The notes under the pieces: model-generated
The model's input: only the letters and a program-made list of their open reading frames with translations
The model's database searches: none
What the model was told of the DNA's origin: nothing
Program-made: the position numbers and the translations under genes
In this document: piece after piece, positions 9,978 to 13,000 of the stretch
Numbering within the stretch: position 1 is the first letter of the stretch
Layout: every line of letters begins with the position of its first letter
Assembly: GCA_951406725.2 (NCBI GenBank)
Contig: OX597814.1
Span: 310,001-374,000, forward strand
Length of the DNA stretch: 64,000 nucleotides
Direction of reading: 5' to 3'
Source: Octopus vulgaris
Lineage: Eukaryota

Positions 9978-10081
9978 TCAAGAATGTTCAGAATAAGGTG
10001 GAGGGTCTTCTTTTGGTAGCATAGTACACATTGAAGGATCTTCAAAATATGGGGGACCATAAACCTCATTTGCAGGTGGCG
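9978..10081 (-). CDS. Coding exon 5 (cytoplasmic tail and stop)
   Basis: Acceptor cttttgttttacag|CG, phase 1. Encodes (A)PPANEVYGPPYFEDPSMCTMLPKEDPPPYSEHS then TGA at 9980-9978. Confidence 0.88.
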
Positions 10082-13000
10082 CTGTAAAACAAAAGAGTTA
10101 TAAGTAATTAGTGTAATTATCTTAGCAGTGACATATATTTAATTCTATAATTTGTTTCAGTCGTTTGACTGCAGCCATACTGGAGCATTGTCATTTAGTC
10201 AAAGAAATCGATCCCAGGATTTATTCTTTGTGAGCCTGAAACATTCTTTCTGTCTCTTGCGCTGAATTGCTAAGTTACAGGGACATAAACACACCAACAT
10301 CGGTTGTCAAGTGATGGTGGAGGGGACAGCCCATGGTGCCACACTGGGACTGAGCCCAGAACCTTGTGGTTGGGAAGCAAGCTGCATACCACACAGCCAC
10401 GCCTACATTGTTAATTAACTGTTACATGTATTTAGCGTAATTAACGAACAGACAGTTCTTCATCATAACCATCATCATTATCATCAGGGTTCCTGGCAAT
10501 TAGCTTGAAAGACCTCCAGAAGTTGGCTGGCAGATCTTTTATGCTTTATACATTTTCCTTGTGTCAGTAATTATGCTGTGACCATGCTGGAGCCTTACGT
10601 TAAGAATTTTTAGTATATGTATATATGTATATATATATATATATATATATATATATATATATATATATGTATGTATGTGTGTGTATATGTTTATGTGTCT
10701 GTGTTTGTCCCCCCCCCCAGCATCGCTTGTCAACCAATAGTGGTGTGTTTACGTCCCCGTAACTTAGCGGTTCGGCAAAAGAGGCCAATAGAATAAGTAC
10801 TAGGCTTCAAAAGAATAAGTTCTGGGGTCGATTTGCTTGACTAAATGTGGTGCTCCAGCATGGCCACCGTAAAATGACTGAAACAAGTAAAAGAGTAAAT
10901 ATATATATATATATAAAATTGTCAAGAAGGCTGAGGGTGTCTTGGCATCACTCACCAAATCCTTTGTGAGCCGCTCTGCGGCTATCTATCTGTGGCTTTA
11001 TATAGCTATGGTAAGACCTCACCTGGAATTTGCATCACCGGTCTGGAACCCCTATCTTGCCCAGGATATCGATCGTCTGGAAGCTGTTCAGCGACGTGCA
11101 ACCAAAAGAATACCCTCCATCAGGCATTTGCCATATCCTGAACGCCTTACTTCCCTGGGCATAAAATTATCAACCATCGTACAAACAATAACTCTGAGCA
11201 CCTTTTCAAACTCCATCTGTCTAACACCCGTGGACATATTTACAAAGTAAGAAAACAGCACAGCTCCCATGACTTCAGGAAACATTTTTTCACGCTGAGA
11301 GTTGCTGAAGCATGGAACAAACTGCCGGCATCAGTTGTTAGTTGTCAGAGCACTGCATCCTTCAAAACTTCCATGCTTCCTGAGATTCGCCAACACTACA
11401 CTTGATTTTCTCCCCTCCATACACACACAAGCATGTATCTGACTCATACATTGTTCGCTTTCCAGACATTTCTACATTACTGCATGTACTTTATATGCAC
11501 TCTCTGACAAGTTGTGGTGCACCTGAGCACTGTATACAATAATTTCATTATTATTATTATTATTATTATTATTATTATTATTATTATATATAAAAATAAA
11601 TGCGTCCTTTTTAAAGCCTAGCCAGGCTCATGGGCCCGGTTTCCTGGTTTCAATGGTGTATGTATTCCCCAGCTGGACGGGACGCCAGTCCATCGCAGCG
11701 TTACTCCTTTTTGCCAGCTGAGTGGATTGGAGCAATGTGAAATGAAGTGTTTTGCTCAAGACCACAACGCGTCGCCCGGTCCAGGAACCGAAACCACAAT
11801 CTTACGATCATGATGCTGACACCCTAACCACTAAGCCACAGGCCTCCACACACACACACACACACACACACACATATATATATATATATATACACACACA
11901 CAATGGGCTTCTTTCAGTTTCCACCTATGAAATCTATTGATAAGGCTTTGGCCAGCCAGTGGCTATAGCAGAAAACACTGGCTCAAGGTGCCATGCAGTG
12001 ATACAGAGCGCAGAACCATAAGGCCCGTAGGTCAACTTCTTACCCCCACACCCACACCTGAGTCTTTTACTTGATTCTTCTCCATTCTCAAAATTTATTG
12101 AAACAAAACAGCATAATTCAAGAGAAATATGGTAACAGAATGGTTAAGCACAGCTAAACATCAATACTGAAACAAGTTATATTAGTCTATTAATGAGCTG
12201 TGTTAACGAGAGATGGCTGAAATTACTACCAAAGTAGATGCAGATGTCAATGAAATCATCATCATCATCATCATCATCATCATCGTTTGACGTTGGTTTT
12301 CCATGCTGGCATGGGTTGGATGGTTTGACTGAAGATTGGCAAGCCAGGAGGCTGCACCAGGCTCCAATCTGATCTGGTAAGGTTTCTACAGCTGGATGCC
12401 CTTCCTAATGCCAACCACTCCGGGAGTGTAGTGGGTGCTTTTTACGTGCCACTGGCATGGGAGCCAGTCGGGTGGCACTAGCATCGGCCACGTTCAGATG
12501 GTGCTTTTTCATTATAAATATCGTTTTCAAATTCTGACACAAGGCCAACAATATTAGGGGACAGGGAAACTCGATCACACTGGCCCCAGTGCTCATCTGG
12601 TACTTATTCTTTCGACCCTGAAAGGATAAAAAGCAAAGTCATCTTGGCAGAATTTGAACTCAGAACACAAAGACAGACTAGATTCCACTTAGCATTTTGC
12701 CCAACATGCTAACGATCCTGACAGCTCGTTACCCTAAATCATTATAAGTATGAAATGTGATGAAACTTACCTGAAGGTCTAATTTGTTCGTGGTTGATCT
12801 GTTGTACTGGAAGAACTGTACCATTAACAGTTCTTTTCTCTTTGGAACATTTAGAGCAATAACATACAGCAATTACGATCGCGATGATTATAATTATTAT
12901 AACGACTATTGTTATAATGATGGTTTTCATCGGGCCATCTGAAATGACATCTGTTTTTCTTAGTTGGATAACATCTAGAGAAAAATAATCGCAGCAAAGT

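Follow-up and report, generated by a model that had tools for sequence, protein, structure and literature searches.

An octopus membrane protein with a predicted CUB-fold ectodomain and conserved P(S/T)AP and PPxY motifs in its tail

The 64,000-nucleotide window analysed here (contig OX597814.1 of Octopus vulgaris, positions 310,001 to 374,000) carries on its minus strand a gene for a 250-residue protein that combines a signal peptide, one CUB-fold ectodomain as predicted by modelling, a transmembrane helix, a juxtamembrane Cys cluster and a disordered tail of 64 residues. We found that two short linear motifs in this tail, PSAPP and PPPY, are nearly invariant among mollusc orthologues, and that the first of them is interrupted by an intron at the same position in octopus, abalone and scallop. 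The stretch 9978-12800 of the window is the 3' end of this five-exon octopus gene, whose product reads as a type I membrane protein. P(T/S)AP motifs bind the UEV domain of TSG101 in the endosomal sorting complex ESCRT-I, and PPxY motifs bind the WW domains of NEDD4-family ligases. We lean towards the view that the protein is a CUB-headed sorting adaptor or receptor that is itself sorted through ubiquitin and ESCRT. The anatomy of the protein, its fold, the range of its family and the conservation of motifs and intron come directly out of the analysis and are presented first.

Two conserved motifs in the cytoplasmic tail

Exon 4 of the gene ends in CAA ATT AGA CCT TCA G ahead of a gtaagt donor, and the start of exon 5 reads ttttgttttacag followed by CG CCA CCT GCA (coordinates in Table 1). 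Translation across this join gives EQIRPSAPPANEVYGPPYFEDPSMCTMLPKEDPPPYSEHS and then the stop codon, and the full reading of the two joined exons is VCYCSKCSKEKRTVNGTVLPVQQINHEQIRPSAPPANEVYGPPYFEDPSMCTMLPKEDPPPYSEHS, closed by the same stop. A first-pass annotation of this DNA had proposed that PSAP is built by the exon 4/5 splice, with CCT TCA G and CG CCA yielding RPSAPP, that the tail ends in EDPPPYSEHS, and that CYCSKC follows the transmembrane segment. The joined translation bears out all three statements. The annotation had set its upper bound at 12800; the transmembrane segment and the Cys cluster lie above that bound, which therefore cuts through exon 4.

In the octopus protein, PSAP occupies residues 215-218, 29 residues after the transmembrane segment; across the family, P-S/T-A-P-P lies about 28-45 residues past the membrane and one or two PPxY copies lie near the C-terminus. 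We measured conservation as the share of the commonest residue per column in a 24-sequence alignment. The nine motif columns averaged 0.96, while the CUB domain averaged 0.50 and the remaining columns of the tail 0.29. This comparison of the motifs with the surrounding tail had been named beforehand as a check, and it came out in favour of the motifs among distant orthologues. The columns that are nearly or fully invariant comprise the ectodomain Cys, Y139 and F141, the juxtamembrane Cys, P215-S216-A217-P218-P219 and P243-P244-x-Y246. Within the first motif, only the Ser column varies among the 24 orthologues, with 23 S and one T, and the other four columns are invariant. This Ser to Thr exchange, the sole change in the motif, occurs in two closely related models nearest to the Elysia sequences, one of them an RNA-seq contig, and it stays within the P(T/S)AP consensus. 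Within the second motif, P244 and Y246 are invariant, P243 reaches 0.92 and x 0.75, so that among the motif columns conservation is lowest at the variable position, in line with the consensus. In the columns flanking PSAP, which cannot be aligned across classes, the commonest residue reaches a share of at most 0.5. In every intact orthologue the order is the same: a single P(S/T)AP comes first, and one to three PPxY, mostly two, come after it.

The octopus tail contains 17% proline. When it was shuffled 20,000 times, P[ST]AP appeared in 0.8% of the shuffles, PP.Y in 10% and both in 0.04%. Conservation and rarity together argue that the motifs are functional elements under selection rather than by-products of a proline-rich tail, and the alignment indicates that this purifying selection is strong. 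O. vulgaris and O. sinensis also have a third proline-tyrosine element, YGPPYF, between the two motifs (GPPYF at window 10044-10058). In O. bimaculoides the corresponding sequence is GPTF, and the element was dropped as a candidate PY-like motif on that account.

The exon 4/5 junction and both motifs are common to all ten deposited isoforms and models (10/10) from three Octopus species, and none of these models uses an alternative to the exon 5 acceptor on which the first-pass annotation had relied. The Haliotis rufescens gene has the same five coding exons, with CCA TCA G and gtcagt at the end of exon 4 and tttcag and CT CCC CCA at the start of exon 5; the corresponding sequences in Argopecten irradians are CCA TCA G with gtaaga and tttcag with CT CCC CCA. 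Because the intron has the same position and phase in octopus, abalone and scallop, we conclude that the splice-assembled PSAP is ancestral to cephalopods, gastropods and bivalves. The transcript evidence for the junction consists of cuttlefish contigs: the cuttlefish orthologue forms an unbroken 771-nucleotide frame on a 1,462-nucleotide RNA-seq contig that contains both motifs and no intron, which places the spliced motif in the mature mRNA of a relative. For the window protein, the contig index had no exact match, and hence no octopus transcript contig was obtained. Assembly of PSAP by splicing is real yet ordinary and has no special meaning beyond an old, conserved phase-1 intron, because no isoform skips the junction or parts the two halves of the motif.

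A predicted CUB ectodomain in a family of mollusc proteins

The ectodomain spans about 120 residues with six dispersed Cys (37, 67, 79, 90, 110 and 119), five of which are invariant in the family, the sixth being kept in at least 90% of the sequences. An AlphaFold2 model built on the 24-sequence alignment (mean predicted local distance difference test score, pLDDT, 73) comprises a signal helix at residues 4-20, a nine-strand beta-sandwich at 27-147 (pLDDT mostly 80-91) and a long helix at 148-192, followed by a tail that is predicted to be disordered (pLDDT about 50, below 55). The best matches of this model in a Foldseek search against the PDB were the CUB domains of spermadhesins (E 4.9e-06, target template modelling score 0.77, root-mean-square deviation 3.1 Å). 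The CUB domains of Kremen, PCPE-1, TSG-6, MASP-1/2, neuropilins, cubilin and Neto2 came next. The modelled ectodomain has a CUB fold. At the sequence level, the Pfam CUB profile (PF00431) did not match the octopus proteins even at E values up to 1, and it matched 8 of 24 relatives with a best E of 3.2e-08. Several relatives carry a precomputed PF00431 match together with the automatic UniProt name 'CUB domain-containing protein'. No significant match came from a profile search against the sequences of solved structures, in which cubilin ranked first at E 0.052.

Neto1/2, Kremen and neuropilin, which are among or akin to these structural matches, likewise have a membrane-anchored CUB fold, and theirs holds a partner protein. 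They differ from the octopus protein in having multi-domain ectodomains and unrelated tails, whereas the octopus family has one CUB only, in which an extra pair brings the Cys from four to six.

The cytosolic position of the tail was deduced from topology, as a signal peptide is combined with a single transmembrane helix. Directly at the membrane border, the element equivalent to CYCSKC reads CCCCK in most molluscs, and Cys186 is invariant. The Cys of this cluster are plausible candidate S-acylation sites.

We detected about 25 relatives, all of them from molluscs and distributed over cephalopods, gastropods and bivalves; those from outside Octopus share 20-40% identity. When 1.84 billion representative proteins were scanned with HMMER from a single sequence, 22 reached E ≤ 1e-3, and two profile searches added further relatives; every match with a source name was a mollusc. 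In the 24-sequence alignment, the octopus protein is 19-36% identical to the members from outside Octopus. The cephalopod members come from three Octopus species and from Acanthosepion pharaonis, the latter with matching RNA-seq contigs. Gastropods contribute Patella, Haliotis, Littorina, Arion, Elysia and Plakobranchus, and bivalves Solemya, Argopecten, Pecten, Mizuhopecten, Ylistrum, Ostrea, Crassostrea, Potamilus, Sinanodonta and Mactra. No relative from outside the molluscs was among the matches listed, whether in the HMMER scan, with a profile of the full alignment or with a profile in which the signal peptide and the transmembrane segment had been masked with X, word-indexed profile searches being liable to miss remote relatives. 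As far as these searches reach, the proteins form an unnamed family restricted to molluscs, and no member carries a functional name.

Distant paralogues in bivalves and abalone retain the same core of CUB and transmembrane segment with other tails that have no P(S/T)AP; PSAPP is kept only in the orthologue group of the octopus gene. The paralogue tails are short and without motifs, contain PPxY only, or extend over 750-850 residues of low complexity. In one Sinanodonta model, the whole unit occurs twice in tandem.

A candidate sorting role and its alternatives

If the protein works as its motifs suggest, the PPxY motif or motifs would recruit the WW domains of NEDD4-family HECT ligases, and P(S/T)AP would recruit ESCRT-I through the UEV domain of TSG101. 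The CUB head may hold a partner, which would be either a soluble ligand or, in cis, a membrane protein next to it. The protein and its CUB-bound partner would be tagged with ubiquitin and would then enter one of two kinds of vesicle: intraluminal vesicles of multivesicular bodies, which lead to degradation or to release in exosomes, or vesicles that bud at the plasma membrane. Four Lys in the octopus tail are candidate sites for such tagging. In this scheme, the binding events, the modification, the identity of the ligand and the destination are all inferred; the reading of the protein as a CUB-headed sorting adaptor or receptor builds on the documented occurrence of the motif pair on membrane proteins and on weak matches to the CYYR1, WBP-1 and RCR profiles. 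By analogy, the protein would take its place, with a CUB head, alongside the PY-motif transmembrane adaptors and alongside SCAMP3, LITAF and ARRDC1. The ESCRT-sorted receptor or adaptor that the first-pass annotation had envisaged is in this respect partly supported, in that the motifs are conserved and lie where such a role would have them.

SCAMP3 provides one comparison, in which PPAY serves WW domains and PSAP serves TSG101 in vesicle budding (PMC9882979). Like the octopus protein, it is a membrane protein with a PPxY-type motif and PSAP in its cytoplasmic part, and it has been implicated in the formation of multivesicular bodies and the budding of extracellular vesicles (PMC9882979). SCAMP3 has four transmembrane helices, no ectodomain and N-terminal motifs, whereas the octopus protein passes the membrane once and combines a CUB head with a C-terminal tail. 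For exosome sorting, SIMPLE/LITAF relies on PTAP and PPxY, in parallel with ARRDC1 (PMC3667717). Both proteins resemble the octopus protein in being membrane-associated and in pairing P(S/T)AP (for TSG101) with PPxY (for NEDD4-family ligases), and they reach exosomes or vesicles derived from the plasma membrane (PMC3667717, PMC9882979). Unlike the octopus protein, they have no extracellular domain, LITAF being anchored by a zinc ribbon and hydrophobic hairpin and ARRDC1 being a peripheral protein of arrestin fold. SCAMP, LITAF and arrestin domains were absent from the Pfam matches of the octopus protein and its 24 relatives, and we therefore regard these proteins as not homologous to it; the likeness is one of motifs and of function only.

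A second comparison concerns single-pass PY-motif adaptors, which bring NEDD4-type ligases to endosomes or surface proteins; among them are CYYR1 and its STMC6 relatives, WBP1L, Comm, PRRG4 and yeast Rcr (PMC11399591, PMC5578492). The PPxY motifs of CYYR1 bind WWP1, WWP2 and ITCH at late endosomes (PMC11399591). CYYR1 and the STMC6 proteins (WBP1, WBP1L, VOPP1, TMEM92) share with the octopus protein a short single-pass layout, Cys at the membrane border and a C-terminal PPxY, and they recruit NEDD4-family ligases at endosomes (PMC11399591). They differ in their short Cys-rich ectodomain, which is not a CUB, and P(S/T)AP is not described for them in the literature consulted. The PY-motif proteins Comm, PRRG4, Rcr and Shisa regulate surface proteins (PMC5578492). 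Commissureless, PRRG4 and yeast Rcr1-2 are small transmembrane proteins with a cytoplasmic PY motif, as is the octopus protein, and govern the trafficking and degradation of surface proteins (PMC5578492). Their lumenal part is different or absent and no P(S/T)AP has been reported in them, so that the likeness comes without demonstrated homology. In Pfam, the transmembrane-plus-tail part of the mollusc family matches CYYR1, WBP-1 and yeast RCR weakly, the RCR profile doing so in three members.

The conserved motifs might instead serve other partners. PPxY could be read by WW proteins that are not ligases, of the YAP/Yorkie, Kibra, MAGI or WWOX type, for which PPxY is a generic ligand, and PSAPP could be a PxxP-type ligand of an SH3 module or of some other proline-recognition domain. 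In that case we would be dealing with a scaffold for signalling or a co-receptor and not with ESCRT cargo. We consider this unlikely, although it has several observations on its side. The conservation of PSAPP extends over five residues, past the four-residue consensus, and in many orthologues a hydrophobic residue follows; in addition, the CUB membrane proteins Neto2, neuropilin and Kremen are co-receptors or auxiliary subunits. Against it, P(S/T)AP and PPxY on a membrane-anchored protein are a documented signature of TSG101 and NEDD4-family binding (SCAMP3, LITAF, ARRDC1; PMC9882979, PMC3667717), the S-to-T swap obeys the UEV consensus, and the motif has beside it no conserved basic residue such as SH3 ligands usually need.

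Several of the same facts have to be held against the sorting-adaptor reading. PPxY is a ligand of non-ligase WW proteins as well. The fifth residue of PSAPP, its second Pro, matches the four-residue core in invariance, and the reader of this motif may therefore need more than P(T/S)AP, or be another proline-recognition domain. Octopus has a single canonical PPxY, while most relatives have two, and in CYYR1 the deletion of one of three PPxY barely affected WWP1 binding, whereas pairwise deletions abolished it (PMC11399591), which suggests that multiple PPxY cooperate. The literature searched contained no mention of the locus names of the protein and its relatives.

A bolder version of the sorting-adaptor reading, which we regard as doubtful, would make the protein a mollusc-specific transmembrane 'late-domain' receptor, in which PSAPP and PPxY attract ESCRT-I and NEDD4-type ligases with enough strength to drive vesicle formation and so export the CUB-bound partner on extracellular vesicles. 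As a type I protein that binds a ligand, it would parallel ARRDC1 or SCAMP3 and have no equivalent described in vertebrates or insects.

It is very improbable that the protein is the mollusc orthologue of vertebrate CYYR1, or that it is some other member of the Shisa-like STMC6 group. The best Pfam match is indeed CYYR1 (PF10873, E 1.1e-05, over the transmembrane helix and the tail), 11 of 24 relatives match this profile at E < 0.01, and both proteins have Cys next to the membrane and a C-terminal PPxY. The scores of 26.3 bits for O. sinensis and 25.9 bits for O. bimaculoides, however, fall below the Pfam gathering cut-off of 31, the match excludes the ectodomain, which is predicted to have a CUB fold and not the C*C*CC*CC module of STMC6 (PMC5578492), and no protein named CYYR1 was among the matches listed in the homology searches. 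CYYR1 membership, which had been raised by a precomputed Pfam tag, was rejected on account of the sub-cut-off score and the different ectodomain.

A further reading takes the motifs for accidents of a tail that is rich in proline and evolves fast, or for the result of an erroneous gene model or acceptor. It is hardly credible and for practical purposes excluded: the proline content, the frequency of PP.Y alone in shuffles and the loss of YGPPYF even in O. bimaculoides would fit chance, but the motifs rarely arise jointly and keep their order in all intact orthologues of three mollusc classes between unalignable flanks, and the junction is common to all deposited models, to the abalone and scallop genes and to the intronless cuttlefish transcripts.

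Gene structure, surrounding repeats and meaning for molluscs

The window is AT-rich, eukaryotic in character and crowded with microsatellites. Exon positions were obtained by mapping deposited Octopus proteins back to it (Table 1). All junctions of the five-exon model have a gtaagt donor and an acceptor with a pyrimidine tract and ag, and the joined exons form a 753-nucleotide frame whose product is 100% identical to O. vulgaris CAI9714694.1. A protein search with the exons matched 'uncharacterized protein LOC115219259' of O. sinensis and LOC106869895 of O. bimaculoides. Exon 3 was placed by homology; a scan by eye found the other open frames between 12975 and 19750 to be repeat-derived only.

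Table 1. Positions of the coding exons and of the protein features within the 64,000-nucleotide window
Feature	Window position	Strand	Description
Coding exon 1	23979-23892	minus	ATG at 23979; signal peptide, about residues 1-22; phase 1 end
Coding exon 2	19976-19750	minus	residues 30-105; N-terminal two-thirds of the predicted CUB-fold ectodomain; Cys37, 67, 79, 90
Coding exon 3	18289-18160	minus	residues 106-148; C-terminal third of the predicted CUB-fold ectodomain; Cys110, 119; invariant Y139, F141
Coding exon 4	12974-12771	minus	stalk; transmembrane helix; Cys cluster; proximal part of the tail, through Pro-Ser to base 1 of the Ala codon
Transmembrane segment	12924-12865	minus	residues 166-185, TIIITIVVIIIIIIAIVIAV, Ile-rich; within helix 148-192 of the AlphaFold2 model
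Juxtamembrane CYCSKC	12864-12847	minus	residues 186-191, directly after the transmembrane segment
PSAPP, first half	12777-12771	minus	Pro215, Ser216, first base of Ala217
Intron 4	12770-10082	minus	phase 1; splits the Ala codon of PSAP (G/CG); contains microsatellites and repeat copies
Coding exon 5	10081-9978	minus	distal tail APPANEVYGPPYFEDPSMCTMLPKEDPPPYSEHS and stop codon; TGA at 9980-9978
PSAPP, second half	10081-10074	minus	rest of Ala217, Pro218, Pro219
PPPY	10004-9993	minus	residues 243-246, four residues from the C-terminus

At the 5' end, an in-frame ATG at 20022 was rejected as the start, as the deposited proteins lead to the exon 2 acceptor at 19976 and to the true start at 23979. 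A ttttacag acceptor 6 nucleotides upstream of the ATG (window 23980-23990) implies at least one 5' untranslated exon further upstream, and none was found in the window. Another O. vulgaris model, CAI9714691.1 (269 residues), reads through from an upstream exon and has 31 extra residues before the signal peptide; the extension would bury the signal peptide and is therefore probably an annotation artefact. At the start of exon 4 (window 12938-12974) lie three in-frame acceptors, 24 and 12 nucleotides apart, with exon starts at 12974, 12950 and 12938. They match deposited isoforms of 250, 242 and 238 residues, and the same three lengths have been modelled in O. bimaculoides. In the 242- and 238-residue isoforms, the extracellular stalk is 8 or 12 residues shorter and the tail is unaltered.

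The introns contain extensive repeats. Much of intron 1 consists of a 2.4-kb, near-pure (TTA)n microsatellite (window 21329-23719; about 800 units, 91-92% matches), which lowers the G+C content to 10-20%. Intron 3 contains a tandem array with a 34-bp unit (window 16307-18037; about 51 copies, 88% identity, higher-order period of 169 bp) that yields many spurious short open frames on both strands. Short interspersed repeat copies occur on both strands of the introns and flanks (e.g. 19406-19591, 27481-27627 and 12283-12640), with frames reading STLPF.LSGSINK and GRASSCR or NPCQHG. Four open-frame pieces, at 10942-11250 (plus), 14062-14716 (minus), 25194-25616 (plus) and 45412-46392 (plus), presumably resemble remnants of retrotransposon proteins; the first two sit in introns 4 and 3. 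A Pfam scan of four open reading frames, one at 10942-11250 and three within 14062-14716, found no family.

To our knowledge, only few cell proteins have both P(S/T)AP and PPxY, namely ARRDC1, LITAF and SCAMP3, and these are central to making and loading extracellular vesicles. Among the known examples, the pair on a single-pass protein with a CUB head is an undescribed architecture. Membrane adaptors of the PY/P(S/T)AP kind are already known; what appears to be new is a CUB ectodomain on a candidate protein of this kind in a mollusc family. The three mollusc classes in which the family occurs represent a very old split. Should the proposed mechanism fail, a clean annotation remains, consisting of a gene model, a domain fold, a family range and two conserved linear motifs. 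Should it hold, the family would link an extracellular binding event to ubiquitin/ESCRT sorting in molluscs and would give a name and a testable function to genes that are now annotated as 'uncharacterized'.

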